From the IMG/VR virus record IMGVR_UViG_3300032236_001613, positions 1-64,000 of that record: a DNA stretch of 64,000 nt. One strand, written 5' to 3'. Under the pieces are notes generated by a model that was not told where the DNA came from, did no database searches, and saw only the letters and a list, made by a program, of their open reading frames with translations. This document shows, piece after piece, positions 44,807-62,336 of this stretch. Numbering within the stretch: the first letter of the stretch is position 1; each line of letters starts with the position of its first letter. The position numbers and the translations under genes were made by a program.

Positions 44807-46168
44807 TTATGACTCGTCGTTAGGTGTTTCCGTTTCTTCTTCATTTGATTCGCCGTCGCTAGCAGGACGTTTCTTTTTAGTCATCCACCCTGCATCTATA
44901 AATTTCTGTAATTTTTTAATTTCTTCGTCAACATCATAAGTTTTTATTTTTGTATCTGAAGTTTGCAATGTAGGATCTTCGGAATTAGTTTTCATATACT
45001 CTTCAATTTCCGATTTTTGATTTTTTAATCCAGTGACTAAATCATAATAAAGGTAAGGATATTTTTCTTTGATCATTTCTTTATTAGGAGGCACATCGGC
45101 GATGTTCATAAAGTATGGTCCGCCTGCATCAAACTGATATCTTTCTTTTCCAACAATCTCTCTATCAACTCCAGCTTTTTTAATATTTTCTTCTGAAGGG
45201 TCGTAAGGATTTAATTGGAAAATCATTGCTCTAGAAGAATAATTATCAAAGTGCCCAGCATAGCTACTATTTGCTGTGCACCATGTTGTACCTAATCCCA
45301 TAGCAACATTAGCAGCTCGATTAAGTGTAGTATATATTTTATAATCGTTATTATCAACAATAATAAAAGCACGTACTGAACGTCTCATCGCAAGCACACG
45401 CATTTTTTCGTTATAGTCTTTTAATATCTGTTCATAATGGTATACTAAGTAAAATCCTAAATCTCTTATACTATCAAATTTTCCTAAATCTGTATGATTA
45501 GCATCAAGCATATTTCTATTTTTTAAGAAGTACCATTTGCTAAGATTCATATTTAACGTACCGGTTATGTCTTCCCAGTTGTGAGCACCTTTGATATATT
45601 TTTCAACAATCCATTTGCTATTAACACCATCTCGAGAATAAGGATTACCTTCGTAGCCAGTCTGTTCAATACGATCGAGATTTGATAAAAACCAATGCGC
45701 AATTTCTTGATCAGTAGCTTTAGGAATCGCTACAGTTGTTGATGGTAATGTTCGAGGAATGTTAGCTTCCTCATGCTTAGTTTTCAAGTTTTCAAATTCA
45801 GGTAGTTTCTTTAGATCATTTTCAACTTGATTAGGTTTTAATCTAAATTGTAGTCCTATTTTATCAAACTTTACTCCACTAGCATATAAGTCAGCCATTT
45901 GCTTCAAACGTTCGGCCTGTGTGTTAGCGACCTTAATTGGACGATCGATCTTTTTTGATTGCGCAGGCGGAGGAGTGTATCCGTTTACTTTTTTTATAAA
46001 ATCTGAAGGAAATGATACGGGATTGTTTTTAATATCTAATCTTACAGCATCGGCTAACTTTTGAACGAGGTTTTTATTACTAAAAACATATTGGCTCCCC
46101 TTTGTAAGAGGAGCAAACTCTTCTGTTAAAAAACTTTCTACTAAATCAATAAGATACCGTATATTCAT
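44807..46168 (-). CDS. putative virion-packaged protein with GTxWCT domain
   Basis: MNIRYLIDLVESFLTEE N-tag; GLGTTWCTA...F..Y...RYQF motif. Confidence 0.55.
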   Translation of the reverse strand: MNIRYLIDLVESFLTEEFAPLTKGSQYVFSNKNLVQKLADAVRLDIKNNPVSFPSDFIKKVNGYTPPPAQSKKIDRPIKVANTQAERLKQMADLYASGVKFDKIGLQFRLKPNQVENDLKKLPEFENLKTKHEEANIPRTLPSTTVAIPKATDQEIAHWFLSNLDRIEQTGYEGNPYSRDGVNSKWIVEKYIKGAHNWEDITGTLNMNLSKWYFLKNRNMLDANHTDLGKFDSIRDLGFYLVYHYEQILKDYNEKMRVLAMRRSVRAFIIVDNNDYKIYTTLNRAANVAMGLGTTWCTANSSYAGHFDNYSSRAMIFQLNPYDPSEENIKKAGVDREIVGKERYQFDAGGPYFMNIADVPPNKEMIKEKYPYLYYDLVTGLKNQKSEIEEYMKTNSEDPTLQTSDTKIKTYDVDEEIKKLQKFIDAGWMTKKKRPASDGESNEEETETPNDES

Positions 46169-46173: not shown

Positions 46174-48240
46174 TTAATACTGGCTAGGATTTAATAAAGA
46201 ACTTCTAATAGCATCTAATATAGGTTTAAGTCCGGTTGCACTTCCTTTAGCAAGATCATACATGAATTCTGCTTTTTCTTGATCGTTCATACCTGACATA
46301 GCCGAATTAAACGCTCTATCCACAATTAATCTTAACGGACTATTATAGGAGGATACATCAAGATCACTAGTAGTGTTTAGTGCCGCTATAAATTTTTTAA
46401 TTTTTGCACCGAGTGAAGAAGCTGTCTGTGCATCATCGTAATTCTGTGCAGCATTAGCTCTATGAATTCTTGCGTTAACAACACTAATAGCATTATGACC
46501 TAATTTTGTAAGAACTGGGCGTATTCTATTAATTACAGCTGCTTTGTCTCGATCGAGATTGAGATTTTTACTAACATCAGGACGTCGTGAAGACATTTTT
46601 TCTCTGTCAACTGCACCTCTAGCAATCCACATCTGTTCTAAAGTACCTAATTGTTCTCTTAAAAGATCGAATGTATTTGGTGCACGAGGATCTGGTCTAT
46701 TTGGAATTCCCATTCTTGCTCTCATTACGCGAGGATCAACATCTCTATCAACTTCGTCGTCGTCACCGGAAAGTCTAAACAACTCAGGGTTAACTTCCTC
46801 ACCACCTTTATAAGCAAGAATCTGGAAAGGCATAGTATTGTCTCTAGCTGGATTGTATTCTTCTCTTCTTTGTGCAGCAGCCTTTGACATACGTTCGATA
46901 TGTTTCTTATCTGGTTTAACTGCAGCCATTCCGTCTCTATAGACTAAAATAACGAAATTGTCAGGATTTGATTTAAATTCCTGATTCATTAATCGTAAGC
47001 TAATGTTGTGCTTTTCGTATGGTGCTTCAGCACTAAGTTTATTACGACGGTGTAAGAAACGAATTAGATACTGACCACTTTTTCTTTGTGTTTGGCTAAG
47101 TCCAGTTTCGGGATCGCCTAGCATTTGAGTTAAAGTACTGGATTCATTAATCATAATCGATTCGATTAATTCTTCGTTCCATACTTTAAATGCTTCTTGT
47201 TCAATGCTTTCGAAAACTTGTTCTTTAGCATATTTGACTTTAAAATTCTTAAACTGCTCTGTTAAGTAGCTGGAGTTTTTCATTTTCATTTCGGTTGACT
47301 CTCTTCTTGGTAATCTTGGGCGGTCTTGGCCAATAGATCTATTGTCGTTGCCACCTCTGTTATTATTTCTACTATCCGCTTCGGGCCATGCGTAAATGTA
47401 ATAGCCCATTAAGTTATTATCCATAAAATCACGTACAACGTGGAATCGTATTCCCATTGCAGAGTATTCTCTTATTTCTGCTCTATATCCAGGGATGTTA
47501 GGATGTTCTACACCCGGATCACCTAGACGCTGTGCATTGTTTTCTAACCATCGACCAACTTGTTGCATTTCAGCCATTGATGTAAAGTTATCAGCACCTG
47601 CTCCTGGTCCTTGTGGATTAAACCCACCAGGTCCACCACGATGCCCAATCATCTGCTGCATACCGGGCTGATTGAGATGCGCAATCACTGTAATATCTTC
47701 AATTGGTGTTCTTGTTAACTGTCCAAAATGCTGGCGTCCAATAACACGCACTGCATTTTTCATATATCCAGGTAGATTTCTAACCTGATGCCATTCGATT
47801 TCACCGCCAGGTACAGTAACTTCTCTGTGTAGTATGTCTGGTAAAGTATTTGGCTCTACAGGTACTTCAGGCTCACCATACCCAGGATCATTAGCTCTAG
47901 GAGCTAACTCTGCATCGGGAATCTCGTCCTGCCCTACATCTAGCTGATCAATACGGCCAAGGTAATCACGCATTTGATCGTTAGGGTTTAGTCTTACATT
48001 GCGTGTACGTTCAGCACTGGCACGATTTAACTCAGCACGACCTCCTGCAGGAGCATCCTTTTTAGCAGGTTCCGAAGCTGCGGGCTCTGATTTCGCCGGG
48101 GCATTTTTAACGCCACCTACAACATCATTAAAATCATCAAACTCGGGAAACGGATTTATTTTTACCCGAGGTTTTTCAGCAGTAGGTTTAGCAGATGTGC
48201 TATCCGGTGCTTTCTTCTTTTTGTCATCATTATCAGGCAT
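46174..48240 (-). CDS. large multi-segment late protein, probably virion internal
   Basis: Late promoter upstream; Pro/Asp-rich N-part; central YLTE/ESIE/LIES/MINE cluster. Confidence 0.5.
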   Translation of the reverse strand: MPDNDDKKKKAPDSTSAKPTAEKPRVKINPFPEFDDFNDVVGGVKNAPAKSEPAASEPAKKDAPAGGRAELNRASAERTRNVRLNPNDQMRDYLGRIDQLDVGQDEIPDAELAPRANDPGYGEPEVPVEPNTLPDILHREVTVPGGEIEWHQVRNLPGYMKNAVRVIGRQHFGQLTRTPIEDITVIAHLNQPGMQQMIGHRGGPGGFNPQGPGAGADNFTSMAEMQQVGRWLENNAQRLGDPGVEHPNIPGYRAEIREYSAMGIRFHVVRDFMDNNLMGYYIYAWPEADSRNNNRGGNDNRSIGQDRPRLPRRESTEMKMKNSSYLTEQFKNFKVKYAKEQVFESIEQEAFKVWNEELIESIMINESSTLTQMLGDPETGLSQTQRKSGQYLIRFLHRRNKLSAEAPYEKHNISLRLMNQEFKSNPDNFVILVYRDGMAAVKPDKKHIERMSKAAAQRREEYNPARDNTMPFQILAYKGGEEVNPELFRLSGDDDEVDRDVDPRVMRARMGIPNRPDPRAPNTFDLLREQLGTLEQMWIARGAVDREKMSSRRPDVSKNLNLDRDKAAVINRIRPVLTKLGHNAISVVNARIHRANAAQNYDDAQTASSLGAKIKKFIAALNTTSDLDVSSYNSPLRLIVDRAFNSAMSGMNDQEKAEFMYDLAKGSATGLKPILDAIRSSLLNPSQY

Positions 48241-48299
48241 TAAAAACCCCTAAAATGTTTTATTAATTATTTATCAAGGTCGTTCTAATAAATATTACT

Positions 48300-48755
48300 A
48301 TGCAAATACAAGAACTGCTATTAGAACTTGCTGATCAACCCTACGACTATCGATTAATCTTCCAAGATCAAACCTTGCACAAATATCGATTTTATAACGA
48401 AAAAAAGTTAATGTATTATGTATTTGTTGATAGATTACAAGAAAATCAAGTACCATACCTAGCAGTAATGTTTCAACAAGTAGATCCTAACGATTTGTGG
48501 TACTCGGGGGATAAAGTTACCGGAACAGGCGATGCTTATCGAGTATTTGCTACTGTAGCTAAAATTATTAACGATGATATAGCCAAGTACGGAGCCGAAG
48601 GACAAATGATATTTGCAGGAGAGGGCGAAAGTAGAAATAAACTCTACGATCGCATAGCTAAAAACCTAAGCCGTTATGTACCTATGTATCAACTAGATCA
48701 TGTTGAAACCGAAGGACCTACTCATGTCTACCACTTTAACAAAATCAATAAATGA
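48300..48755 (+). CDS. putative virion-packaged protein
   Basis: MQIQELLLE N-tag; TGTGDA.RVFATV...SR.KLY.R motif. Confidence 0.55.
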   Translation: MQIQELLLELADQPYDYRLIFQDQTLHKYRFYNEKKLMYYVFVDRLQENQVPYLAVMFQQVDPNDLWYSGDKVTGTGDAYRVFATVAKIINDDIAKYGAEGQMIFAGEGESRNKLYDRIAKNLSRYVPMYQLDHVETEGPTHVYHFNKINK

Positions 48756-48969
48756 TCTCAAAATCGGCCAATTAGCAATAATCAAATATTCCTCTAACGT
48801 ATCATTAAACGAATTAGGATTCTTATCAGGTGAACATGTAAAAGTTATAGCTAGAGCTGCCTTTAATGGTCCTACCGCTGTTAGAGTCGGTACTAGCGTA
48901 TTTGCTTTACGTAAAGAAGAAGCTGAGACAATTAGAGTCTATAACGTCCTACACGATAAACGTTCTTAG
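48724..48969 (+). CDS. feoA: FeoA-family SH3-like protein
   Basis: LKIGQ.A.I...L.ELGFLSGE.VKVI.RA.F.GP..VRV....FALRKEEA..I.V. Confidence 0.8.
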   Translation: MSTTLTKSINDLKIGQLAIIKYSSNVSLNELGFLSGEHVKVIARAAFNGPTAVRVGTSVFALRKEEAETIRVYNVLHDKRS

Positions 48970-49165
48970 CACCCTTTATCGGACTACCTGTAGAAATAGC
49001 ACGACCTACGTCGTTAAAGTCTACTCCTTTCTTTGTACACCAGTCTTGTAAATCGTTAATAATATACTGCTTAACAGTTTTCGTAGGATTTTTAGAATTA
49101 CAGACTTTGATCAAATACGGTAATGTGCGATCAGCATCTTCAATAAGCTTAATATATTCTCTCAT
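48932..49165 (-). CDS. small protein, stand-alone copy of C-terminal module of 49175..49972
   Basis: Shared KQY...DL..W...KGVD......TG....GAKNVYRVGRYRL. Confidence 0.7.
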   Translation of the reverse strand: MREYIKLIEDADRTLPYLIKVCNSKNPTKTVKQYIINDLQDWCTKKGVDFNDVGRAISTGSPIKGAKNVYRVGRYRL

Positions 49166-49174
49166 AACAATTCC

Positions 49175-49972
49175 TTATAATCTATAACGTCCTACACGAT
49201 AAACATTCTTAGCACCACGAACAGTTTCTCCTGTTCCTAATGCTCTTATTGCAGCTTGTAAGTCTACACCCTTGCTGTTAGCCCAGGCTTCTAAATCCTG
49301 CACTACATACTGTTTACCGCTTAATCGAGAAGTATTACGAGGATTGCAGATCTGTATAAGATACCCATTATGTCCTCGATCAACGACCTTATACTCTTTA
49401 ATACTTGAACCTTTCAATTTTCGATAATCATCAGCACCCCAACTTACTTCACTATCATCGTGAGGAGTTTGATCAACTTTTACTGGGATGTTTAATTTTC
49501 GGCATTGAGACTGAAATCTTTTTAAATGTCCTCGTAATCCTCGAGTATTCCAATCCTCTTGTTTTATCCAAACTTCTTTAACGCAGCTTAATGGTATATC
49601 TCCCATGGCTCTTTCTTCTTCTTCGGAGCTATGACCGCCGGGGGCTATCTGTAGATTGTCAGGATCGTAATCACTTAATACTTCCCAGTTGAACGGTAGT
49701 ATTTTAACACGATGCCTTAATTTATTTTGATCTATAACAAAGGTAACATGTGCTGTACTTTTATCGGCCCAAAGATTAACTGCGTTCCAGTTTATATTAC
49801 TAAACCATAATCGAGGATTTCTAGTTAAACTGACACTGGTATGCGCTATAACACCGTCGTTTGAAAATGCTTTTATAAAACCAGATTTTAGTATTTCAAA
49901 AGCATTGTTTAAAGTAGTGCCATGATATAAATCTTGACGATTGTTTTCTAATAATAATTCATTTAGACGCAT
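49175..49972 (-). CDS. putative ADP-ribosyltransferase-fold protein
   Basis: LYHGT...I..SG, VSLTR, EEEE: H-S-E ART-like motif order; MRLNELLLE N-tag. Confidence 0.6.
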   Translation of the reverse strand: MRLNELLLENNRQDLYHGTTLNNAFEILKSGFIKAFSNDGVIAHTSVSLTRNPRLWFSNINWNAVNLWADKSTAHVTFVIDQNKLRHRVKILPFNWEVLSDYDPDNLQIAPGGHSSEEEERAMGDIPLSCVKEVWIKQEDWNTRGLRGHLKRFQSQCRKLNIPVKVDQTPHDDSEVSWGADDYRKLKGSSIKEYKVVDRGHNGYLIQICNPRNTSRLSGKQYVVQDLEAWANSKGVDLQAAIRALGTGETVRGAKNVYRVGRYRL

Positions 49973-49984
49973 AATAGATATTTA

Positions 49985-51025
49985 TTAATTGCGTCTGCCT
50001 ACACGCTCTACAGCGTTTTCAATATACTCTTCAATATCCTGATCACTATAACCTAATAACTGCCCGGCTCGTCGATGCGCCTGCTGCCAAAGACGACTAG
50101 TAGGATTATAAGTTCTATAGACATTACTAGATGTTATCTCTAAAAACTCTTTAACATCAGCTTCATGCCCGGGTAATGCTACAATAAAACGCATAAACCC
50201 ATTGAGAAGATACTGATGTATGATCCAACCGGAGTTCTGTACTAGTTCAGCAATACGCCGTCTATGCGGGGCAAACTCCTGAACGTCAAACCAAGCTAAG
50301 GGCTTTTCTCCTGCTAGCATTAACCGAAACTCTTTACCCACATGAGGCCCTATGGTTTCGTTGACACTAGATCTAAATCCTGTATAAGCATACGGATCGT
50401 TGATCACAGGCACATTACCTCTCCATAAGAGATTACCACCTATATAGTCAAAATCATCACAACTGTGCTGGCTACAAACTAACTGCTCAGTTTCAAAGAA
50501 CTTATCCCACATAGATCCAAATGGCTCAGATAGTGCAATCACTTGCTCAAGCTTCTTTCTTAAAGGCGCTTCCTTACCTAAACTCTTTAAGTGTATTTTC
50601 ATCTTGTCAATAATGGATATCTTATCACCTGAATTAACATATCTGTCCGATGGAGACTCCTGTTCAGCATAATCAGCCATAAAGTTTAGAGCACGCTTTA
50701 ATCCACGCTGCTCGGGCAGCTCATCTAACTGTTCGGTAGGTAGCCCTATATACTCTTGCCCATCTACTGTAAACTTACGCGGTGTACCAAATCTGGGTAC
50801 ATAAGGATTATTAATACGCTTGGCTACGCGATAAAATTCTAAAGGATCAAAGGTTAATCTACTGGAAAACTCTATACCAGGATATCTAGTACCATAAACT
50901 TTGAATAACCCACCATGCGGACTAAGAAAAACTGCAGCATAGCTACCCTCACCTACATAGGTATAACCGCGAGAAGTTAGAAATTCTTTAAGCTGATCTC
51001 TAGTGATTACTTCATATATACGCAT
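49985..51025 (-). CDS. protein-kinase-like domain fused to second domain
   Basis: VGEGSYAAVF, FKV, P.F, E.L, D...GNL, V.NDP; after SVNE a second domain ending GQLLGYSDQDIEEY. Confidence 0.6.
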   Translation of the reverse strand: MRIYEVITRDQLKEFLTSRGYTYVGEGSYAAVFLSPHGGLFKVYGTRYPGIEFSSRLTFDPLEFYRVAKRINNPYVPRFGTPRKFTVDGQEYIGLPTEQLDELPEQRGLKRALNFMADYAEQESPSDRYVNSGDKISIIDKMKIHLKSLGKEAPLRKKLEQVIALSEPFGSMWDKFFETEQLVCSQHSCDDFDYIGGNLLWRGNVPVINDPYAYTGFRSSVNETIGPHVGKEFRLMLAGEKPLAWFDVQEFAPHRRRIAELVQNSGWIIHQYLLNGFMRFIVALPGHEADVKEFLEITSSNVYRTYNPTSRLWQQAHRRAGQLLGYSDQDIEEYIENAVERVGRRN

Positions 51026-51028: not shown

Positions 51029-51397
51029 TTATTCGGGCAGCATCTTTTCCGCTACACGTTTAATTAATTGACGCTGGCTAACAGTTAACTCTAATACTTG
51101 TTTAGCTACATGCGTTTTAGTTGACGAGTTAACTGTAATATACCCTTCTTGATCAACTTCGCCTACCGGCTGCTGTATACTAGGTACTGTTTGATCAGGC
51201 GAACCCGTTTCGAGACTAACTGTATAACGATACTCGGGATTACCTAGATAAGGATAAAGCGCAACATAGAATCTATACTTATTAGGATCTAGACGTCCAA
51301 CTAATAAATGCCCAATACCAGATTTAATAGCTAAGTCAGTAAAATCATGACGTACAATAGCAGAGACATTTTCTCGTAATAATTCTGTTACTCTCAT
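51029..51397 (-). CDS. putative virion-packaged protein
   Basis: MRVTELLRE N-tag. Confidence 0.55.
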   Translation of the reverse strand: MRVTELLRENVSAIVRHDFTDLAIKSGIGHLLVGRLDPNKYRFYVALYPYLGNPEYRYTVSLETGSPDQTVPSIQQPVGEVDQEGYITVNSSTKTHVAKQVLELTVSQRQLIKRVAEKMLPE

Positions 51398-52281
51398 TGT
51401 TTATGCTTCTTACTGTGCACAGCATCCTTCTCTGGCTCACTGTCTACGTCAAAATCAAATCCATGTTTGTCATCAGATCGATCAGGTAATGCTAAGGGTT
51501 CTTCTTCAGTGTCTAAATCAGCTAATCGATTACGCATAGCTTTTACTTGATCAGGACTCATTTGATCAGTCTCTGACTTATCCGATACTCCGGATAATGC
51601 TTTGACTCCTGCTAACTGTGCTAATCTATCTAACCCAAACTCTGCAGCACTGTGCGCTGCTGCCTTTGTAGCAATATCAGCAGCTTGAGGTTCTTGACTA
51701 TCTTTAGGTTCGTCATCTAGTGTACCTGCAACTCTTTGATCTACATAAGATCCTACATCGGTTTCGTCAACTATATTTCCTTCTTCATCTGCGGTAGAAT
51801 CTACGCCATATGTTTGCGGATCGTACTCAAGACTTACAGATTCGAATTTTTTGGTGTTAGGATCTTGATAAGTTAATAAAGCTTCATAGGGATTTTCATC
51901 ACCAAACGATGTGTGTAACCACGGTACTCCACCTTCGCTGACTCCCGTTTCAAAATGTGAACCCCAGGGCATAGTTCCATGCGGCCCGTTACCAATCTCG
52001 GTTACATCATTTACACCAGGTTGCCATTCTTCAAACTCGGGTGCTTCACTATAACTAGAATCCAAATAAAGCGTACCCATATTCTTTACAGTCCAACTAG
52101 TAGCTGCAGCTACTAGTCCATCGATCATTGAACCGGCTTCAACTGCTGAAGCAGCAGCCGCTGTAGCAGCCACAGGCTCCGCAGCAGTACCTACAGGCAA
52201 CTTAGCACCTGTGGCCGCAGCTATTCCTGCTGCTCCTAGACCTTTGAGAAAATCTCTACGGGAAATTTCATATATACGCAT
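51394..52281 (-). CDS. acidic protein with twin-arginine (Tat)-like signal
   Basis: MRIYE-ISRRDFLKGLGAAGIAAA; late promoter. Confidence 0.6.
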   Translation of the reverse strand: MRIYEISRRDFLKGLGAAGIAAATGAKLPVGTAAEPVAATAAAASAVEAGSMIDGLVAAATSWTVKNMGTLYLDSSYSEAPEFEEWQPGVNDVTEIGNGPHGTMPWGSHFETGVSEGGVPWLHTSFGDENPYEALLTYQDPNTKKFESVSLEYDPQTYGVDSTADEEGNIVDETDVGSYVDQRVAGTLDDEPKDSQEPQAADIATKAAAHSAAEFGLDRLAQLAGVKALSGVSDKSETDQMSPDQVKAMRNRLADLDTEEEPLALPDRSDDKHGFDFDVDSEPEKDAVHSKKHKQ

Positions 52282-52958: not shown

Positions 52959-53237
52959 CTAAAAACTAATACCATTGTCAACAAAATACCCTTCAACAAT
53001 GTTTCGAACTAATTGCGGGTGACAATGCACATACTCACTGCGTACCGTAAACCTGTCCTTTATTATGCTTAATATCCTGCTTTCATGCAACCGATCAGGT
53101 ATACTATACGTTTTTAAAAAATAACAACTGGGGTTGGCTGTCTTATATGCTCTTAGCCTACTACTGGGATTGCCTGTGATTCCTAACTTACAACGGTGCG
53201 GCTTGTCTGGATCTACCATGATATAATAATAAAGCAT
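52959..53237 (-). CDS. GIY-YIG/T5orf172-like protein
   Basis: YYIM...KLGIT.NP..RL..Y.TANP...E..I...EY. Confidence 0.7.
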   Translation of the reverse strand: MLYYYIMVDPDKPHRCKLGITGNPSSRLRAYKTANPSCYFLKTYSIPDRLHESRILSIIKDRFTVRSEYVHCHPQLVRNIVEGYFVDNGISF

Positions 53238-53947: not shown

Positions 53948-54033
53948 AACCTGTGCATAGTAATATAACTGTAACGCAAATGCTAAGTTATTGTTTTTGT
54001 TAGCATTTTTTTAATTGCGTTACTACACAGGTT
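53948..54033 (+). other. long nested inverted repeat (hairpin/cruciform or structured RNA)
   Basis: AACCTGTG/CACAGGTT, GTAACGCAA/TTGCGTTAC, AAATGCTAA/TTAGCATTT. Confidence 0.7.
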
Positions 54034-54426
54034 CCCGTTAATTAAAAAAGCGCAGTGCAGTTTGTGTGCACGGGGTAGTCCCCGTGTTAATAAAAATACA
54101 CAGTTGCAGTACCTGCAGCAACGCAGTGGGAGGTGCCCCTCGATTACATCAGCTGCTGTGCAGATTTTTTAGTGGGGTCTGGTTGACAGAGTTAACTTAA
54201 CTGTTAAACTTAACATATGCAAACAGCAGCACATACAACACGCAGTCAACAACAGCAGGAGCAGGGTGTGTGCGTGCGCTGCTGGGAGGTCTCTCGCAAA
54301 GCAGTCTTTAAACTGCGCTGTGCGTTACTGGGAGAATCCCGTGTTTGCAAAAGCAGCGCACACGTTTGTGCAATTGGGAGAATCCCTAGTTTGTTGCTGC
54401 TGCACGCAAAAGTGCACCAGTGGGAA

Positions 54427-54515
54427 GATTACAAAAACTTAATCTAATAGTGCTTGCAACTGCTGTTGCCGGCGCTATACTACATAACGTAGCAATAGTG
54501 CTACAGCACGCACAA
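54427..54515 (+). promoter_or_regulatory. early promoter cassette, copy 1
   Basis: GATTACAAAAACTTAAT-10-TTGCAA-16-TATACT-GTAGC/GCTAC hairpin-AGCACGCAC. Confidence 0.75.
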
Positions 54516-54528
54516 TAGGAATCTGTAT

Positions 54529-54816
54529 ATGCCCTCGTATCGTATTCGTTTGCTTGCCAATGGCGAAGTTGAGATTGCTGTCAACAGCCGCCGCGCACGT
54601 GGTCGTGTAGTAGCTGAAAAGACTGTTGAGGTTGAAGAGCCCGCAGCAGCAAAGCGTCAGACCAAAGCAGCGCAAGTGCGCGACAAGATCCGTCAAGTCA
54701 AGCCTGTAATGGGTGATGCTGGGCGCCGCGTTGTTAGCGCATGGGCACGCACAAAGTTGGGTATGAATCCTAGCATGGCTGCTACTTATGTGAAAAACAA
54801 CTGGACCTGCTGCTAG
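54529..54816 (+). CDS. basic early hypothetical protein
   Basis: AGGA SD after cassette; C-terminal LGM...A.TY..N. Confidence 0.7.
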   Translation: MPSYRIRLLANGEVEIAVNSRRARGRVVAEKTVEVEEPAAAKRQTKAAQVRDKIRQVKPVMGDAGRRVVSAWARTKLGMNPSMAATYVKNNWTCC

Positions 54817-55016
54817 TTTACAGCAGAAGAGAGCAGTAGCATTAGTGCTGCTGCTCTCACCAGTTGTATTCTAAGAGTTGGGTTTGGGCCGGCGGGGTTT
54901 GACCCCATAGCAGTTTCTGCAATGCTAAGGCCTTTAGCGGGGTATTCAAGAATAAAGGTTGATCTGTAGATAACTACTGTTATACTAACAGCGTTAAGCA
55001 CGCTAAGGAGTTTGTT

Positions 55017-55127
55017 ATGGCTCGTGTTAAGAAGAATGGGTGCCTAATGGCACGTAAGACCCGACAAGTTAAACATGCCGGATATAAGTGCGCTGCAACT
55101 GGGCGCTGGCGCCGAGGGTTCAAATAA
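55017..55127 (+). CDS. 36-aa Arg/Lys-rich peptide
   Basis: MARVKKNGCLMARKTRQVKHAGYKCAATGRWRRGFK; TAAGGAG SD and promoter upstream. Confidence 0.6.
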   Translation: MARVKKNGCLMARKTRQVKHAGYKCAATGRWRRGFK

Positions 55128-55225
55128 TGGCTAAGGTACGGCGTCCTCGTAATCAACAGCGTGTGTTGCAGCAGCGAATTGCCTGCAGCCGTGTGGGCGG
55201 ATGTCGTCCAAAACGGAGCCGCTAA
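55127..55225 (+). CDS. 32-aa Arg-rich peptide
   Basis: MAKVRRPRNQQRVLQQRIACSRVGGCRPKRSR; TAATG coupling. Confidence 0.55.
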   Translation: MAKVRRPRNQQRVLQQRIACSRVGGCRPKRSR

Positions 55226-55362
55226 TGTTAATCGACGATGAATCCGAAGACTATTACGAGCGTCGTGTGGCTCGTGCTGATGCTGCTTTCGATCTCTTTA
55301 TTGATTGGACTAGTGTTGCAGCCATGATTGGGATCGTGTTATATTTGTTGCTGCGTTGTTAA
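55225..55362 (+). CDS. 45-aa peptide with C-terminal TM helix
   Basis: MLIDDESEDYYERR...VAAMIGIVLYLLLRC; TAATG coupling, GGAG SD. Confidence 0.55.
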   Translation: MLIDDESEDYYERRVARADAAFDLFIDWTSVAAMIGIVLYLLLRC

Positions 55363-55389
55363 ACGTTTTCCTGTGTGTTGTGCATGGTT

Positions 55390-55418
55390 GGGCGGAGTTC
55401 GCATCCGCCCTTTTTTTT
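55390..55418 (+). terminator. intrinsic terminator
   Basis: GGGCGGA-7-TCCGCCC T8. Confidence 0.9.
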
Positions 55419-55540
55419 AGCTGGCTGCGGTCTCGGGGTTCCTCCCACTAACAGCGTTTTGGTATAATACTCCTGCTGCAGTATGTGTTGGGAGGCGCCC
55501 CAGTGTTTAAAATGTTTGTGCGCTATTTTCTTATTGGGAT

Positions 55541-55637
55541 GATTACAAAAGCTTAATGTTAAAGTGCTTGCTTTATTTTTGTGTGTGCTTATAATAGCAA
55601 TTGTAGCAATAAAGCTACGCATAAAATAAGCACGCAC
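55541..55637 (+). promoter_or_regulatory. early promoter cassette, copy 2
   Basis: GATTACAAAAGCTTAAT-10-TTGCTT-16-TATAAT-GTAGC/GCTAC-AGCACGCAC. Confidence 0.7.
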
Positions 55638-55638
55638 T

Positions 55639-55875
55639 ATGTACACATTGGAAGTTAGCTATCCGTTGACGCTGTATTGGAACAGCATTAACGTAGATCG
55701 GGAGATCTCTGAAGCTGTTAATGCTACGAGCACAGGCAGCGGAGCGGGATTTGGGCAACGTGATCTCACGTTCCGCTTTACAACTGCAGAGGCTGCTAAT
55801 GCTGCTGCAGAGCGAGCACGACGTATACACGCTAGCATCTCGTGCAACGTGTCTGCTGACGCTTACTACGCTTAA
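55639..55875 (+). CDS. early hypothetical protein
   Basis: Follows cassette 2; GSGAGFGQRDL.F.F. Confidence 0.65.
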   Translation: MYTLEVSYPLTLYWNSINVDREISEAVNATSTGSGAGFGQRDLTFRFTTAEAANAAAERARRIHASISCNVSADAYYA

Positions 55876-56020
55876 ACAACTGCCTCGTTACGCACAGCTG
55901 AAAATGCTGTGCGTGCAGGCGGGGTCAGAATCCCAGGAAGAAAAAATTGCAAAGCTCGATGCAGGGGTGGGGTCAGATCCCGTGCAAACTTTTACGCAAA
56001 CTTTTGCAAGACAGTGAGAT

Positions 56021-56110
56021 GATTACAAAAACTTAATGCAAAAACAGGTTGCAACTGCTACTAGACTTGCTATGCTACATAACGTAGCGATACTGCTACA
56101 GCACGCACAA
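56021..56110 (+). promoter_or_regulatory. early promoter cassette, copy 3
   Basis: GATTACAAAAACTTAAT-11-TTGCAA-16-TATGCT-ACATAACGTAGC..GCTACAGCACGCACAA. Confidence 0.75.
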
Positions 56111-56120
56111 AGGGTTAGAT

Positions 56121-56423
56121 ATGAACGAGATTGCTAAAGCCCTAATCACACTCGCTAGCGAGATTAAGGAGCAGGCGGGCCCTGTCTCACTGATCTTCCA
56201 TGCAGCAGGAAGTCAGGGCGACTTTGAGACCGCGTTGTACATCTTCAACGACAAGAGTCTCTTCAACGCTACTTACTTCACTGAAGAAGAGCTTGAGAAG
56301 TTTAACCTCATCATGCCCGCTATTGCAGATGGGCTCAACAAGTTGCAGAAGTTTGACGAGCAAATTGCTGCATTAGATGCCGCTAAGTACCACTCAGCAG
56401 ACTATCTCAAAGCAGTTAACTGA
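56121..56423 (+). CDS. early hypothetical protein
   Basis: Follows cassette 3; terminator at about 56435-56466. Confidence 0.7.
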   Translation: MNEIAKALITLASEIKEQAGPVSLIFHAAGSQGDFETALYIFNDKSLFNATYFTEEELEKFNLIMPAIADGLNKLQKFDEQIAALDAAKYHSADYLKAVN

Positions 56424-56631
56424 CACATAGCCGGCGCATAGTAGGGAACTGCTATGCGCTTTTTTGTTGCCGTTAAGAACCCCGCAGAAGGTTTTTACGC
56501 ACATGTATATAAAGTCTCGGGGTAGCCCCAAGGACTGCAGCCGCAAACGTGAACGAGGTCTAGCGGGGTATTTAAAAAGGTTGACGGGCTGTAGTTGTGT
56601 CTGTATGCTTGTGCTGCTAAAGGAGCACGCA

Positions 56632-56739
56632 ATGAACTTTAAGTACTTCGCACCATGGCTTTTTGCATTCATCTTATTACTGTTGGGACACTTTACTGCT
56701 GCTATCTGCATTGCCGTGTTGATCTTGCTCTGCAGCTGA
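56632..56739 (+). CDS. 35-aa hydrophobic membrane peptide
   Basis: MNFKYFAPWLFAFILLLLGHFTAAICIAVLILLCS; TTGACG-17-TATGCT promoter, AAGGAG SD. Confidence 0.6.
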   Translation: MNFKYFAPWLFAFILLLLGHFTAAICIAVLILLCS

Positions 56740-56820
56740 AAAATCTTTGTGAGGCAGAGTTGACAGCGTTGTTGCAACGTGTAAACTACTAATGTAGAAC
56801 TAATAACAAGGATCTCATTT

Positions 56821-57024
56821 ATGCACGCTAAGTTCAAAATTGTAGATCGTAAGACTGGAGTTGTACTCTACGACCAAGTGCACGGAGTCGGTCGCGCCAC
56901 GCACTTGCTGTATGGTGCTCGTGCAAGTAATACGCGAGTGTTCAAGACTGATGAGCGAGGCTCGCGTGAAATTACTCTCAACTTTAATATTTGGCAGCTG
57001 GAAAACGGCTTACGGGAGGCTTAA
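56821..57024 (+). CDS. early hypothetical protein
   Basis: TTGACA promoter at 56761, AAGGA SD. Confidence 0.65.
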   Translation: MHAKFKIVDRKTGVVLYDQVHGVGRATHLLYGARASNTRVFKTDERGSREITLNFNIWQLENGLREA

Positions 57025-57203
57025 TGGCTATGCTACAGCGTTACCGTTGCTCGGGCATTGACGGTATGGACAAGGACCATCAGGGAGATTGGGTTCGTTA
57101 CGAAGACTATCTCTCACTGTTACAGAAGTTGGATGAAATCCGCATAAATCTTCTCCAGCTTCGCGATCCACGTTATCGGGACATCCAAAAGGAATTCAAA
57201 TGA
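57024..57203 (+). CDS. early hypothetical protein
   Basis: TAATG coupling, GGAGG SD; G.WVRYED motif. Confidence 0.6.
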   Translation: MAMLQRYRCSGIDGMDKDHQGDWVRYEDYLSLLQKLDEIRINLLQLRDPRYRDIQKEFK

Positions 57204-57445
57204 AAACCAATGACATTAAGAAAGGTCAGCGTATCCAGCAACGTAATGGCTGGTACGGGACTATGTTTGATGACAAGAAGGGCAACATCCGTTGCGTTGA
57301 AGTTGAAGGTGACTTCAAAGAGATTGGGAGTGTTTACGCACACGAGATTATTCGTGCGCAGGATGCTAACGGTGTTTGGCACACAGTCGAACACACCGAA
57401 GCTCAGATGAAACTTAAGTCCAAGTTGGGTGCCATGGGGTGGTAA
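57200..57445 (+). CDS. early hypothetical protein (SH3-like beta)
   Basis: ATGA overlap, AAGGA SD; IKKG.R...GSVY.H.I. Confidence 0.65.
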   Translation: MKTNDIKKGQRIQQRNGWYGTMFDDKKGNIRCVEVEGDFKEIGSVYAHEIIRAQDANGVWHTVEHTEAQMKLKSKLGAMGW

Positions 57446-57539
57446 CACCTTTGTACAGGTACTGTTGATCTTCACAGTAGACAAAAGGTTGGCGAACTCT
57501 TTATAATAGAGGAGTTCGCTAATCCTATGGAGATCAGAG

Positions 57540-57638
57540 ATGTTTGGTCGTCGAAAGGCTACTGTGCGAAAGGTTCGTTCAACGCCTCGTTCGCGTGCTG
57601 CTTACGGTTCTACTACGACTCGCCGCCGTAAGCGTTAA
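57540..57638 (+). CDS. 32-aa protamine-like Arg-rich peptide
   Basis: MFGRRKATVRKVRSTPRSRAAYGSTTTRRRKR; own promoter, GGAG SD and terminator. Confidence 0.6.
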   Translation: MFGRRKATVRKVRSTPRSRAAYGSTTTRRRKR

Positions 57639-57673
57639 TGATTTTGCGTGCTGCCGCAATGATGCGGCACTTT

Positions 57674-57711
57674 GGGCAATCGTGTTTAGCACCTCGATTG
57701 CCCTTTTTTTT
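57674..57711 (+). terminator. intrinsic terminator
   Basis: GGGCAATCG-12-CGATTGCCC T8. Confidence 0.85.
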
Positions 57712-57856
57712 ATCTGTTGATTCTGCTGCGGGGTATTCCCACTGGCTAAACAATCTACCTATATATACCAGTGCACTATAAGTGAGAACAAGAGCTTAGA
57801 CTGATCTTAATCTACATAAGCCTTACACACCGACGATTTCGTAGTTTTTGGCTTTG

Positions 57857-57993
57857 TAAGTCATTGATTCTAAACACTGCCCCGACATCTAGTAGAGTAG
57901 TTCTGCATACAGCAAACACCGACTCGGGGCAGTTTCGCTACAAGCCGCTGTAGACTATACAGATGAAAACCACTAGGGGTTAAGTCATTGATT
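57857..57993 (-). promoter_or_regulatory. two IHF-consensus sites flanking a 10-bp inverted repeat
   Basis: TAAGTCATTGATT at 57857 and 57981 (reverse complement AATCAATGACTTA = WATCAAN4TTR); ACTGCCCCGA/TCGGGGCAGT between. Confidence 0.6.
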
Positions 57994-58202
57994 TCATTAG
58001 AGTGGAACTACCGATCAAATAGATTAAAAAGATTAGATGATGAAAGAGTTGGTCTTAGTTTTCCGGCCGGGGTTGCCCCGTGATCTAATAATAGCACGGT
58101 TTGGTCGAGATCTGTTTACATTCTTTAAAGACGGGGCCAGGTTGACAGATTTAACTTAACGCATTAATATTGGCGTTGTAAACAATAATTGGAGCAGCTG
58201 AG

Positions 58203-58349
58203 ATGCTGGTTTATGTAGAATTGGCTTTAGTTGTGGCTTATATTGCATGGGTCGCACGGTTGTCGCTGAATGCAATGAAAACGGATGCCAGGGACGAACT
58301 GCGTAAGAGCTTTAAGGAGTTCCGCCGAGCGTTTGAAGATCTGCACTAG
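58203..58349 (+). CDS. 48-aa single-pass membrane peptide
   Basis: MLVYVELALVVAYIAWVARL...; TTGACA promoter, GGAG SD. Confidence 0.55.
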   Translation: MLVYVELALVVAYIAWVARLSLNAMKTDARDELRKSFKEFRRAFEDLH

Positions 58350-58470
58350 TACAGCCGGTGGGGTGGTTCTCACAGACTGATGCGCTGCATCAAAAAGTCT
58401 GTGAGAACCGGTTGACAACTGCTCTGCAGCGTTTATAATAGAATACACACGCAACCACCATAGGTGATTT

Positions 58471-58761
58471 ATGGCTACTACGAATGTGATCCGCATTGCT
58501 TTAGACGAGCGTATTGTTGAACGCTTGAAGAAGCCAATCCTCAAGGTTTGGCAGCAGGTCAGTCACGATGTCATGCGAGATGCTGAAGATATGGGCGAAC
58601 GCATTGACAATGAGAGCGCCATAGAGTGCTGCATTGATGCAGATCGTTTGCGCTATGAGGCTAACGATCGCGCTGCAGACGACTTTTTTAATATGATTTG
58701 CACCGAGCACGGCTATCCAGCTGTTCTCACGTTCCTTTCCAAAAAGATACGATTGGTTTAA
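58471..58761 (+). CDS. early hypothetical protein
   Basis: TTGACA-17-TATAAT promoter, AGGTG SD. Confidence 0.7.
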   Translation: MATTNVIRIALDERIVERLKKPILKVWQQVSHDVMRDAEDMGERIDNESAIECCIDADRLRYEANDRAADDFFNMICTEHGYPAVLTFLSKKIRLV

Positions 58762-58956
58762 TGAGATGATCATAGAAGTTATTAAAGCTGTCTACAACAG
58801 CCGAACGGGACAGCTGAATGTTACACTCAGCGACGGTGCCCGCCAGGTTGTGGTAGAAGGTGTAGAAAACATCGAGCGGGATTACCTGCTACGCGAGTTT
58901 TACAGTCTCGCACGTTGGTCTGCTGCAAACGTGAACAAGGTCTAGCGGGGTATTAT

Positions 58957-59118
58957 ATGGATATAGAACGAGAACAACTGCACGCACGTATACAACAACT
59001 GAAAACTCGTGCAGCAGCCGCAGAAGCATTACTGCTGAAGATCGAAGTCACCCTATGGGATCGTTCGGAAGCTAAAGACATTCAAGATCTCATACACAAC
59101 TATTTCAAGAGGGACTAG
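58957..59118 (+). CDS. small coiled-coil hypothetical protein
   Basis: Probable start MDIEREQL. Confidence 0.5.
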   Translation: MDIEREQLHARIQQLKTRAAAAEALLLKIEVTLWDRSEAKDIQDLIHNYFKRD

Positions 59119-59119
59119 T

Positions 59120-59422: not shown

Positions 59423-59661
59423 TGCAAACGAAAGCTGGACGTAACCGGCCGTGGGGCTAATCCCAAGACTACAAACGCGAAGCTGGAGACAGGTTCTTGG
59501 GAAAATAGCACGACCGTACTATAAAACGACCGTGCTAATAGCACGACCGTTTGATCCCATGACTACAAACTTGCGCAAGCTCTTTGACCTAGTGGGAGAG
59601 GTTGACAACCCGTTTGCAGCCTCTTATAATGTATTTGTAGAGTTAACATAAGGCGGTTGAT

Positions 59662-61512: not shown

Positions 61513-61566
61513 TGCATGCTCCTAAACAAAGGGCGACAGCACTATTGCTGCCGCCCATGCAATATA

Positions 61567-62314: not shown

Positions 62315-62336
62315 ATTCGAAACTAGTGTATACTAC

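Follow-up and report, generated by a model that had tools for sequence, protein, structure and literature searches.

The window, as we call the whole stretch of DNA analyzed here, is the first 64 kb of the 328-kb genome of an uncultured myovirus that has T4-type core genes. It encodes adjacent proteins of 265 and 77 amino acids in a run of genes that open with a similar short tag (Table 1). Both reading frames were found as described in the initial annotation of this DNA, as were the motifs YHGT (residues 16-19), SLTR (48-51) and EEEE (117-120) in the larger product, the 13 final residues common to both products, and the 9-residue tag of the smaller one. That annotation had also proposed that the C-terminal module of the larger protein is duplicated as the next gene. 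Indeed, a BLASTP comparison of the two products aligns residues 204-265 with residues 17-77, with 33 identities in the shared 62-residue module (53%, E 1e-22), which is far more than chance would give. When all six frames of the complete 328-kb genome are searched, exactly these two copies are recovered. Of the last 15 codons of the two genes, 11 have the same nucleotides, compared with 3-5 of 15 in each of the two preceding blocks. The shared tail therefore looks like the result of local gene conversion or of very strong constraint; in the related locus L008, the tail of the small gene differs.

Table 1. Features of the tagged-gene locus, in window coordinates
Feature	Position	Strand	Basis or remark
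Tagged DUF6934 gene, 151 aa	48300..48755	+	tag ends L-L-E; ATAAATA at -12
77-aa protein gene	48932..49165	-	9-residue tag ending L-I-E (nt 49139-49165), then module
AAGGAA, Shine-Dalgarno-like	49171..49176	-	overlaps stop of ART gene; serves 77-aa gene
265-aa protein (ART) gene	49175..49972	-	ORF call; tag, ART-fold domain, linker, basic module
C-terminal module, residues 194-265	49178..49393	-	72 aa, pI 10.1
Linker, residues 168-193	49394..49471	-	ends I-K-E (191-193, nt 49394-49402), putative internal protease site
ART-fold domain, residues 10-167	49472..49945	-	AF2, VIA, Foldseek, PDB profile, conservation
N-terminal tag, residues 1-9	49946..49972	-	ends L-L-E; putative capsid-targeting sequence and prohead-protease site
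ATAAATA, T4-late-promoter-like	49979..49985	-	starts 13 nt upstream of ART gene ATG
Upstream tagged gene, 346 aa	49985..51025	-	internal V-N-E at residue 223 (nt 50357-50365)
Tagged gene, 122 aa	51029..51397	-	tag ends L-R-E; ORF and tag search
Tagged gene, 295 aa	51394..52281	-	tag runs directly into twin-arginine signal (TAT_signal, E 4e-7)

The 77-aa ORF is a real gene, as orthologues of the same length are called in four related loci (L008, L009, L015 and L016). Compared with its L008 counterpart, 27 codons are identical, 23 differ synonymously only, and 28 differ non-synonymously. Its module comprises residues 10-77 (68 aa, pI 9.7). The 265-aa protein has an orthologue (P0001) with 84% identity, and synteny is kept in L008. 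Only 9 nt separate the ART gene from the 77-aa gene, which has no promoter motif of its own, and the two are probably transcribed together.

We analyzed the 265-aa protein's N-terminal domain by structure prediction, fold comparison and profile searches. The earlier claim of an ADP-ribosyltransferase (ART) fold is borne out, with ART-superfamily proteins making up all of the top matches and most of the Foldseek and VIA lists. The AF2 model of the domain (pLDDT 80.5) is matched best in VIA by the NAD+ lobe of yeast Tpt1 (Z 11.9, rmsd 2.2 A over 109 residues, 24% identity), followed by DarT (Z 9.7-10.7 over ~145-155 residues) and then by toxin ARTs at Z ~6. The Foldseek E-value is 1.5e-5, and the PDB profile search returns Tpt1 proteins sharing the L-Y-H-G-T motif as well as DarT1 (E 7.7e-4). 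The modeled split beta-sheet fold with its NAD+-binding core thus supports membership in the ART superfamily. The first 10 residues of the model have a mean pLDDT of 64, and the fold alignments start at model residue 7-10; the tag therefore lies outside the ART core. The modeled part of the linker (residues 171-180) has low confidence (pLDDT 55).

ART transferases place their catalytic glutamate at the start of strand 5. In our family alignment of the domain, Arg-51, Glu-119 and Glu-120 are invariant, and His-17, Ser-48 and Glu-117 nearly so. His-17 lies within modeled strand 1 (15-20), Ser-48-x-Thr-Arg-51 is placed in and just past strand 2, and Glu-119 and Glu-120 open modeled strand 5 (119-123). 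Judged by strand position and conservation, on which our active-site assignments rest, His-17 and Glu-117/119/120 may be catalytic. The strand-2 tyrosine of the H-Y-E (ARTD/PARP-like) class is absent, its place being taken by Ser-48, followed by Arg-51. All matches of the domain and its family to ART sequence families fall below the curated Pfam cut-offs: a PARP match covers only residues 9-36 of the 265-aa protein, and DarT (PF14487) is sub-threshold in 9 of the 50 family members (best E 9.6e-4) and not matched by the window protein. The initial annotation had compared a virion-delivered ART with Alt of phage T4. The ART fold stands, but the domain is of the His type, akin to DarT and to the NAD+ lobe of Tpt1 and unlike the R-S-E enzymes to which Alt belongs. 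We rejected an Alt-like enzyme on account of the histidine, rather than arginine, on strand 1 and of an ADPrib_exo_Tox search, which found no Alt/VIP2-type ART in the 328-kb genome and no match in the 265-aa protein.

DarT1 and DarT2 are the ssDNA base ADP-ribosyltransferases of DarTG systems. The window domain resembles DarT in being a single-domain ART with a strand-1 histidine. At the strand-2 position DarT1 has a serine and not a tyrosine (PMC11543638), as does our domain. In contrast to DarT, with which it shares ~12% identity, it has no DarG/NADAR partner and is found among phage cargo genes rather than in a bacterial toxin-antitoxin system. Tpt1/KptA is the best fold match and shares L-Y-H-G-T, but the N-terminal RNA lobe of this family (PF01885) is absent from the window protein, which has an invariant glutamate cluster instead; the matches cover the C-terminal lobe only (e.g., residues 88-177 of 177), and just 9 residues precede this lobe. 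We found no PHROGs family for either protein and one weak match among the 50 family members. There was likewise no match in tblastn searches with three family members against 50,697 GenBank phage records, in a blastn search with the locus, or in a RaK2 profile search for the family. The domain belongs to an uncharacterized, metagenome-only ART family with conserved His-17, Ser-48/Arg-51 and Glu-117/119/120.

We next consider the tags. In the genome, 15 of 377 ORFs start with M-[RKQ]-[ILVM]-x-E, where 0.9 would be expected (P ~7e-14), and tagged ORFs cluster at 48.3-52.3 kb and 80.5-86.9 kb. A typical tag reads M-R-[ILV]-x-E-[LIF]-[LI]-x-E, with its residues conserved while the codons vary. The T4 capsid-targeting sequence (CTS) is a 10-residue sequence ending in I-A-E (PMC8442874), and in our reading the tag may represent the version of it used by the group to which our source phage belongs. 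The tags of our two proteins, which end at LLE-9 and LIE-9, fall within the pattern of ~6-10 residues ending in [LI]-x-E, and those of the family members P0009, P0024 and P0059 are almost identical to the T4 CTS. L013, in which P0009 lies, has the usual make-up of a T4-like internal-protein locus and contains four more ORFs that bear near-T4 CTS tags, one of these tags being internal to the called ORF; this context, like that of P0035, was read from a short contig (9.4 and 5.1 kb, respectively). Of 66 instances of the ART core, 62 have an [ILVM]-x-E motif ahead of them, against a background of 1.6% per position. The glutamate of this motif usually lies 6 residues ahead of L-Y-H, also in the internal repeats of P0030 and P0047, and because of this fixed distance it may be a structural part of the domain and not a cleavage site. 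The neighboring genes vary in a modular fashion: the C-terminal half of the 346-aa protein is a stand-alone tagged gene in L015, and its homologue in L010 bears the basic module at the C terminus (P0004). The DUF6934 domain also occurs as a cassette inside the polyproteins P0033, P0035, P0036 and P0040. As one tagged neighbor has a Tat signal, the tag may in some cases stand for something other than capsid targeting. We read the locus at 48.3-52.3 kb as a hyperplastic internal head protein gene locus.

The source genome contains terminase, sheath, UvsX-like and DnaB-like genes, its terminase being 43% identical to those of RaK2-like jumbo phages; this gene content places the phage among T4-core myoviruses. 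A homologue of the prohead protease gp21 (Peptidase_S77, 88.9 bits) is found at 307528-307956 of the genome, its gene spanning 307459-308088. The protease lies between two ORFs: one, whose first 120 residues contain 11 [ILVM]-x-E sites, we take to be the scaffold, and the other, upstream, we take to be the portal. A Gp23-type capsid protein (265 bits) follows the protease region and has L-A-E at residue 41. A gp21-type protease and T4-type head genes are thus present in the same genome, as for the internal proteins of T4; the specificity of the protease is assumed to be that of T4. The ART gene has no Shine-Dalgarno sequence between the ATAAATA and its ATG and is thus near-leaderless. The ATAAATA motif occurs 78 times in the genome and lies within 45 nt upstream of 53 genes, which include ORFs matching tail-sheath-neighbor and virion-structural families. 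In about 25 genes it sits at -11 to -15, and about 10 of these are tagged. Near-leaderless starts are common among the tagged genes, so that the N-terminal bias might in part have a role in translation.

We aligned the module separately from the ART domain, using 9 sequences, and compared 6 further variants with it (15 in total). It is found in at least seven architectures, several of them without any ART: fused to unrelated proteins, alone behind other tags, or, in P0002 and P0003, at the N terminus and followed by L-D-E. P0005 and P0066 look like the 5' end of a Tat-protein gene spliced onto the module. In L015 and L016, a pair of modules is conserved where the ART is absent. An [ILV]-x-E motif directly precedes the module in all 15 variants, with the glutamate invariant in the 9-sequence alignment (IKE-193 in the window), and the same glutamate ends the N-terminal tag where the module is a gene by itself. 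The initial annotation had suggested that the module is a targeting or oligomerization domain of the ART, and that the stand-alone copy acts as a regulator, decoy or adaptor. Neither idea is supported: the module pair is kept in L015/L016, which belong to related phages without the ART, the module also occurs alone or on unrelated proteins, and a protease-type [ILV]-x-E always stands ahead of it. Co-folding of the 265-aa and 77-aa proteins gave a score of 0.09 (mark, 0.34), which is uninformative for or against an interaction.

All modules are basic (pI 9.5-10.3), and their mature form would comprise 68-72 residues with a pI of ~10. The model has the order strand-strand-helix-helix-strand-strand, and its best PDB match is the DNA-binding region of I-HmuI (residues 115-173; rmsd 2.7 A over 58 residues) with a Z of 6.7, a value within the range of models that lack a clear match. 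Atlas neighbors are NUMOD1, NUMOD3 and I-HmuI_NUMOD-like clusters (TM 0.53-0.63). A Foldseek search of the PDB gave nothing below E 0.6, an Atlas feature search gave nothing, and searches of Pfam and PDB profiles gave no NUMOD or other credible sequence match. The predicted fold thus weakly resembles NUMOD DNA-binding domains, and we infer that the module probably binds DNA. The likeness to the NUMOD modules of I-HmuI and I-TevI is one of fold, with middling scores; unlike these, the window module shows no sequence-level match and has no nuclease domain attached. Among the relatives of the ART domain, P0012 joins it to a Nudix domain; P0030 and P0047 contain at least five and at least eight ART copies per chain, respectively; and P0033, P0035, P0036 and P0040 combine an ART-like domain with DUF6934-like segments and, in differing combinations, with ParB-like, nucleotidyltransferase and NT5C-like segments.

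With somewhat more confidence than doubt, we interpret the tagged ART and module genes as shuffled cassettes for internal head proteins that are processed by the gp21-type protease and injected. Here, the tag would first attach the protein to the prohead's scaffolding core and then be removed by the protease, which would cut after [ILV]-x-E. The 265-aa protein would be made late from its near-leaderless transcript and packaged, and cuts predicted after LLE-9 and IKE-193 would yield two products. One would be a single-domain ADP-ribosyltransferase of ~180 residues that has a His/Ser-Arg/Glu active site and comes closest to DarT and the NAD+ lobe of Tpt1, and the other the 72-residue basic module, of which the 77-aa gene would supply a 68-residue paralogue upon loss of its own tag. 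In our view, both genes would yield the same sort of small basic internal protein, with the ART as an optional cassette. Analogous to IPI-III of T4, the modules would travel with the DNA and probably bind it. The ART would be injected together with them and, drawing on the NAD+ of the host, would modify an early target there. RNA polymerase alpha is the target of T4 Alt; the relatives of our ART point to a nucleic acid or a nucleic-acid-bound factor as the more likely target here. Virion delivery of the 265-aa protein is supported indirectly, by the tag and its enrichment in the genome, the gp21-type protease, the late-promoter motif and the L013 locus. Since protease cleavage would regenerate identical mature products in either case, there would be little cost to joining or separating cassettes, which would account for the occurrence of the module by itself, in tandem or with different partners.

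We compared this arrangement with known head-packaged proteins. T4 Alt, a head-packaged, ~70-kDa member of the R-S-E Alt/VIP2 clade (PMC5512222, PMC5694885), undergoes cleavage at ITE-6, and a further cut at LTE-619 takes off 63 C-terminal residues (PMC5694885). These cuts parallel those predicted at LLE-9 and IKE-193, and both proteins combine an ART fold with a very short N-terminal propeptide, putative in the 265-aa protein, that ends in I/L-x-E. Alt is a late protein, and the promoter motif suggests that the 265-aa protein would be one as well. Alt is injected with the DNA, as predicted for the 265-aa protein. Unlike Alt, the window domain has a strand-1 histidine, comprises ~160 residues and shows no detectable sequence similarity, and its target probably differs. 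The internal proteins of T4 are small, highly basic and otherwise diverse, with a conserved tag of ~10 residues that the prohead protease cuts off (PMC3012670, PMC8442874). IPI* has 76 residues, comparable to the predicted mature modules (68-72 aa, pI ~10). Our modules differ in having no sequence similarity to these proteins, in tags that are usually M-R-based and one residue shorter, in being predicted rather than known to be packaged, and in also being fused to enzymes. Polyvalent proteins carry tandem ARTs of the H-Y-D (Tox-ART-HYD2) clade and have been proposed to be packaged in heads (Iyer et al. 2017; PMC5512222), with their processing ascribed to a metallopeptidase domain (PMC5512222). 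The multi-domain chains P0033, P0035, P0036 and P0040 and the multi-ART chains P0030 and P0047 resemble them. In our system, by contrast, we find a His/Ser/Glu pattern, prohead-protease-type junctions and domains present as separate tagged genes. The 265-aa protein, with one enzyme domain, one small module and no peptidase domain found, is not itself a polyvalent protein.

Several observations would also fit other explanations. NUMOD domains normally tether nucleases to DNA, and the module could similarly stay attached to the ART, making it a DNA-directed, DarT-like enzyme whose free paralogue competes for sites or tunes activity. The proximity of the ART to DNA-modifying DarT, the NUMOD-like fold and the variety of partners, as expected for a targeting domain, agree with this; we nevertheless think it unlikely, as a protease-type [ILV]-x-E is found at every junction and the same glutamate closes the tag of stand-alone genes, the paired modules persist where no ART is present, and the order is inverted in P0002 and P0003, with L-D-E after the module. 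We would be very surprised to find a toxin-antitoxin or immunity pair, in which the 77-aa protein neutralizes a toxic ART until delivery. The DarT-like ART and the small gene immediately downstream, probably co-transcribed, are reminiscent of such systems, but the paralogue of the small protein is the tail of the ART protein itself, and not an antitoxin that removes ADP-ribose. We rejected this reading since no Macro or NADAR domain is matched in the 328-kb genome, the neighboring genes included, and since the small gene persists in phages without the ART.

The resemblance to the Tpt1 NAD+ lobe, which is the best match in both structure and sequence down to L-Y-H-G-T, raises the question of whether the N-terminal domain is a transferase at all. 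It could instead bind NAD+ or ADP-ribose, or be a remnant of a Tpt1-like RNA 2'-phosphotransferase acting in RNA repair or sensing, and the Nudix fusion in P0012 would suit such a role. However, most of the catalytic Arg-His-Arg-Arg tetrad of Tpt1 resides in the RNA lobe, for which the 9 residues ahead of the domain leave no room, and the invariant glutamates open strand 5; we consider a non-transferase quite improbable. We give similarly little credence to the N-terminal motif being a by-product of near-leaderless initiation, or of recombination between paralogous 5' ends, rather than a capsid or cleavage signal. The share of tagged genes among those with a closely spaced ATAAATA and the apparent splices in P0005 and P0066 speak for it, but other near-leaderless late genes are untagged, amino acids rather than codons are conserved, some family members carry near-T4 CTS tags, and [ILVM]-x-E also stands ahead of domain copies that lie inside a protein, well away from a start codon.

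How the first minutes of an infection go is decided by the proteins that a phage injects, and apart from those of T4 and a few giant phages, hardly any such proteins are known, to our knowledge. If the internal-head-protein reading is correct, head-packaged effectors would gain an ART family related to the nucleic-acid-modifying DarT and Tpt1, and the tag together with [ILV]-x-E would provide a simple rule for spotting capsid cargo in uncultured T4-type phages. It would also suggest a reason for the plasticity of the locus, as fusion and fission of cassettes would be cheap, and the tag would be a candidate packaging signal for T4-style protein-delivery work. A broader proposal, which we advance tentatively and regard as doubtful, is that this undescribed His/Ser-Arg/Glu ART family is widespread capsid cargo of uncultured T4-type phages and, once injected, ADP-ribosylates the nucleic acids of the host. 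The family would belong to a plug-and-play system of effector cassettes delimited by prohead-protease sites, whose genes could fuse into polyproteins, including chains with eight or more ART copies, or come apart into tagged genes while the mature injected products stay unchanged. Should our reading be wrong, the locus is still a clear case of domain shuffling in a jumbo phage. No run holding the region is on record as RNA; it is found in metagenomic DNA runs alone, one of them labeled freshwater.

The larger of the two genes encodes a 265-aa protein with YHGT (residues 16-19), SLTR (48-51) and EEEE (117-120) motifs; 9 nt separate it from the gene for a 77-aa protein. Residues 204-265 of the former and 17-77 of the latter are 53% identical (BLASTP, E 1e-22) and their final 13 residues are the same, which confirms the initial annotation of an ART-motif protein whose tail is repeated as a separately tagged ORF. 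These are the only two copies of this module found by a six-frame search of the whole genome. Because 11 of the last 15 codons are nucleotide-identical between the two genes (3-5 of 15 in the preceding two blocks) and the tail of the small gene differs in the related contig L008, the identical tail looks like the product of local gene conversion in the window lineage.

Features of the module locus and its surroundings (window coordinates unless another sequence is named)
Feature	Coordinates	Strand	Remark
453-aa protein gene	44807-46168	minus	
688-aa protein gene	46174-48240	minus	Lys-rich N-terminus
Further ATAAATA example	48282-48288		
FeoA-domain gene	48724-48969	plus	E 7e-14
Small gene	48932-49165	minus	ORF, 77 aa
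Large gene	49175-49972	minus	ORF, 265 aa
ATAAATA of ART gene	49979-49985	minus	at -13
346-aa protein gene	49985-51025	minus	
V-N-E-223 of 346-aa protein	50357-50365		
295-aa protein gene	51394-52281	minus	TAT_signal, E 4e-7
T5orf172-domain small gene	52959-53237	minus	E 1e-4
Short-ORF region	~54000-64000		GC 45-48%
tRNA-Lys	62240-62314		
Second tagged cluster	80522-89424 (genome)		outside window
67-aa tagged gene	310468-310671 (genome)		directly 3' of major capsid gene
133-aa tagged gene	6285-6686 (contig L015)		
Skewed-composition DNA	2300-5300 (contig L005)		beside module gene

The sole Pfam match of the 265-aa protein is a sub-threshold one to PARP (residues 9-36). An exhaustive phmmer search yielded 60 representatives at E <= 0.001; most match residues 1 to ~165 and are either 150-200-aa proteins or domains within larger chains. 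In an alignment of 50 of these, L15, I27, R51, E119 and E120 are invariant, and E9, Y16, H17, T19, S48, F78, P93 and E117 nearly so. The ART fold proposed in the initial annotation is borne out by both profile search and fold prediction. In the PDB, the alignment profile matches Tpt1/KptA (E 1.7e-4) and DarT1 (E 7.7e-4), and individual members have sub-threshold Pfam matches to DarT (n=9), PTS_2-RNA (n=8) and PARP (n=5). The AF2 model of the domain (pLDDT 80.5) has the canonical ART strand order, and yeast Tpt1 (E 1.5e-5) and DarT take the top Foldseek ranks. With VIA-align, the model superimposes on the Tpt1 NAD+ lobe with Z 11.9 and an rmsd of 2.2 A over 109 residues (24% identity), followed by DarT (Z 9.7-10.7) and classic toxin ARTs (Z ~6). 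ARTs carry a catalytic Glu at the start of strand 5, where the model places Glu119/120; His17 lies in strand 1 and Ser48 in strand 2. DarT1 likewise has a strand-2 Ser instead of Tyr (PMC11543638).

The domain falls outside two known groups, Tpt1 and Alt/VIP2, and its membership in a third, DarT, is not supported. The Tpt1 RNA lobe is missing, since only the 9-residue tag precedes the NAD+ lobe. DarT gives no match above the cut-off, and the 328-kb genome contains no Macro or NADAR partner domain. T4 Alt belongs to the Alt/VIP2 clade with a strand-1 Arg, whereas the 265-aa protein has a strand-1 His, and no ADPrib_exo_Tox match occurs anywhere in the genome. No PHROG corresponds to the family, three of its members found no match by tblastn in 50,697 GenBank phage records, and its profile found none in RaK2. 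We conclude that the family forms an uncharacterised branch of the ART superfamily, known so far only from metagenomes, whose closest neighbours are the members that act on nucleic acids.

Both proteins start with a tag. The pattern M-[RKQ]-[ILVM]-x-E opens 15 of the genome's 377 ORFs, against an expectation of 0.9 (P about 7e-14). These ORFs cluster at 48.3-52.3 kb, around our two genes, and at 80.5-86.9 kb; further genes, as far as 89.4 kb, fit a looser pattern. The second cluster holds at least eight tagged genes, among them those for an NT5C-like protein and for a 63-aa peptide, the latter recurring as a cassette of the polyproteins P0033 and P0035. The tag residues are encoded by differing codons across genes, which argues for selection at the protein level. 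In the fuller form, found in both the 265-aa and the 77-aa protein, [IL]-x-E stands at residue 9. The capsid-targeting sequence of T4 comprises 10 residues ending I-A-E and is removed in the head (PMC8442874), it is all that T4 internal proteins have in common (PMC3012670), and Alt is cleaved at ITE-6 as well as at LTE-619, where 63 C-terminal residues are lost (PMC5694885). Several ART-family members (P0009, P0024, P0059, P0054) have tags almost identical to that of T4; the contig of P0009, L013, encodes four further ORFs with such tags, one of them internal to a called ORF. In 62 of 66 instances across the family, the ART core has an [ILVM]-x-E in front of it (background 1.6% per position), and in most cases the Glu stands exactly six residues ahead of L-Y-H. 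These instances include internal repeats, with at least five ART copies in P0030 and at least eight in P0047, and the motif is thus not merely a feature of translation starts. The model of the 265-aa protein places the tag outside the ART core: confidence is low over the first ten residues, and the alignments to known folds begin at residue 7-10.

The IMG/VR virus record (328,068 bp, estimated completeness 92%), whose first 64 kb make up the window, encodes there a tail sheath, tail tube, large terminase, ssDNA-binding protein, UvsX-like recombinase and helicases; the terminase shares ~43% identity with its counterparts in RaK2/121Q-like jumbo phages. A T4-type block of head genes lies outside the window, and we read its ORFs as portal, small protein, acidic repeat protein, prohead protease, scaffold and capsid. 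It contains a Peptidase_S77 (gp21) match (88.9 bits), a Gp23-type capsid match (265 bits) with L-A-E at residue 41, and between the two genes an ORF with 11 [ILVM]-x-E sites within its first 120 residues. The tag of the 67-aa protein encoded beside the capsid gene has I-N-E and I-F-E.

Late promoters of T4 have the consensus TATAAATA. Our genome contains 78 copies of the motif ATAAATA, and 53 genes have one at most 45 nt upstream. In about 25 genes it lies at -11 to -15 from the ATG without a Shine-Dalgarno sequence (near-leaderless), and about 10 of these genes are tagged; in a second class it mostly falls between -24 and -35 (overall span -19 to -45), and a Shine-Dalgarno-like GGAG/AGGA often comes after it. 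ATAAATA also precedes ORFs matching virion-structural families and is found just upstream of P0009. We infer from this motif that the ART gene is expressed late, during head assembly. The 77-aa gene has no ATAAATA of its own and is probably co-transcribed with the ART gene, because its AAGGAA overlaps the upstream stop codon. Near-identical DNA was found only in metagenomic runs, one with a freshwater label; none of these runs is on record as RNA.

We found 15 distinct versions of the module in at least seven architectures. It stands alone behind a 9-residue tag (the 77-aa protein, P0008, P0067, P0068), a 5-residue tag (P0064, P0065), a tag like that of the ART protein (P0063) or an apparent 5' end of the adjacent Tat-signal gene (P0005, P0066). 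It is C-terminal to the ART domain (the 265-aa protein, P0001), to a homologue of the upstream 346-aa protein (P0004) or to a ~100-residue segment of unknown fold (P0057), and N-terminal to an unrelated ~220-aa domain, with L-D-E after the module (P0002, P0003). All 15 versions have [ILV]-x-E just before the module, with the Glu invariant in the module alignment. In the stand-alone genes this Glu is the last tag residue; in the 265-aa protein the site is IKE-193, after a linker whose modelled part (171-180) has low confidence. The locus differs among related phages. L008 and L009 share the window's order, ART plus module and then the 77-aa gene, with a different upstream tagged gene. L010 lacks both the ART and the 77-aa gene and carries the module on the 346-aa homologue, and L015 and L016 have two tandem stand-alone 77-aa module genes (4-nt overlap) and no ART. 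The conserved unit is therefore a pair of module paralogues beside the FeoA-like and 688-aa/453-aa genes; the ART is optional and extends one of the two paralogues at its N-terminus.

The neighbouring gene follows a similar pattern. The 346-aa protein appears to consist of two cassettes: its C-terminal half is the stand-alone 133-aa gene of L015, whose tag ends exactly at V-N-E-223. Domains joined in P0033, P0035, P0036 and P0040 are separate tagged genes in the window phage; they include DUF6934-like, ART-like and NT5C-like segments and a short G-K-G-P-G peptide cassette. The 295-aa protein, whose tagged gene is conserved in L008, runs from a 5-residue tag straight into a twin-arginine signal, and P0005 and P0066 look like its 5' end spliced onto the module. 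Were the tag removed in the head, the protein would be injected with its Tat signal exposed; otherwise, the tag may not serve as a capsid signal in every case.

The AF2 model of the module (pLDDT 77.6) shows a disordered tag followed by strand-strand-helix-helix-strand-strand. Foldseek found no match in the PDB. An exhaustive VIA search ranks first residues 115-173 of I-HmuI (Z 6.7, rmsd 2.7 A, 58 residues), which we take to be its DNA-binding region, with a DNA-binding chromatophore-targeted protein (Z 4.8) and the I-TevI DNA-binding domain (Z 3.6) at lower ranks. An Atlas shape search returned NUMOD1, NUMOD3 or I-HmuI_NUMOD-like clusters (TM 0.53-0.63), a likeness with no match at the sequence level. 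The predicted mature modules have 68-72 aa and pI 9.5-10.3, leaving out the N-terminal fusions P0002 and P0003, whose 80-residue cut enters the following linker; they fit the description of T4 internal proteins as small and highly basic (PMC8442874). DNA binding by the module is a reasonable but weakly supported suggestion.

Beyond the gene anatomy, we infer the following course, which we consider somewhat better than an even bet. The 265-aa protein would be made late and brought to the prohead core by its tag, where a gp21-type protease would cut after LLE-9 and IKE-193, releasing an ART enzyme of ~180 residues and, separate from it, a basic module of 72 residues. A paralogue of 68 residues would come from the next gene. 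All three would be ejected together with the DNA, and the ART would use host NAD+ on an early target, possibly a nucleic acid or nucleic-acid-bound factor, as its nearest relatives suggest.

A distinctly less likely course is that the module is not cut off and directs a DarT-like ART to DNA, the free paralogue acting as a competitor. It is improbable that the tag merely results from leaderless translation or 5' recombination, as the motif also occurs at internal positions and the same residues have varied codons. Equally doubtful is a non-transferase N-terminal domain, NAD+-binding or Tpt1-like, a reading opposed by the invariance of the Glu cluster and the absence of the RNA lobe. Least credible of all is a toxin-antitoxin pair, since the small gene is kept in phages without the ART and the genome has no domain that removes ADP-ribose.

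Earlier work has described head-packaged ARTs, capsid-targeting tags and polyvalent effector proteins (PMC5512222, PMC9503650, PMC3012670). What appears to be new is an ART family with a His/Ser-Arg/Glu pattern, close to DarT and Tpt1 and absent from the current phage family libraries searched, together with the pair of small basic modules. It also appears to be new that prohead-protease-type sites repeatedly mark the boundaries of cassettes, so that the same units occur fused, in tandem or split.

The FeoA-domain gene is convergent with the 77-aa gene; it covers the last 38 nt of the latter in the window, and the overlap is 14 nt in L008 and L015. The 688-aa and 453-aa proteins, whose genes are syntenic with module genes in L007, L008, L010 and L015, have no Pfam or PHROG match. 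The T5orf172 gene is again found next to the variable locus in L005, L010 and L015 and may be a mobile or endonuclease-like element contributing to cassette shuffling. The listed stretch of L005 has overlapping ORFs on both strands, rich in Gln/Ala/Thr/Cys/Val, and looks like low-complexity skewed-composition DNA rather than ordinary genes. The last ~10 kb of the window has no Rfam match besides the tRNA-Lys; apart from this tRNA it contains short ORFs only, mostly <105 aa, and its GC content exceeds the 33-41% found elsewhere.
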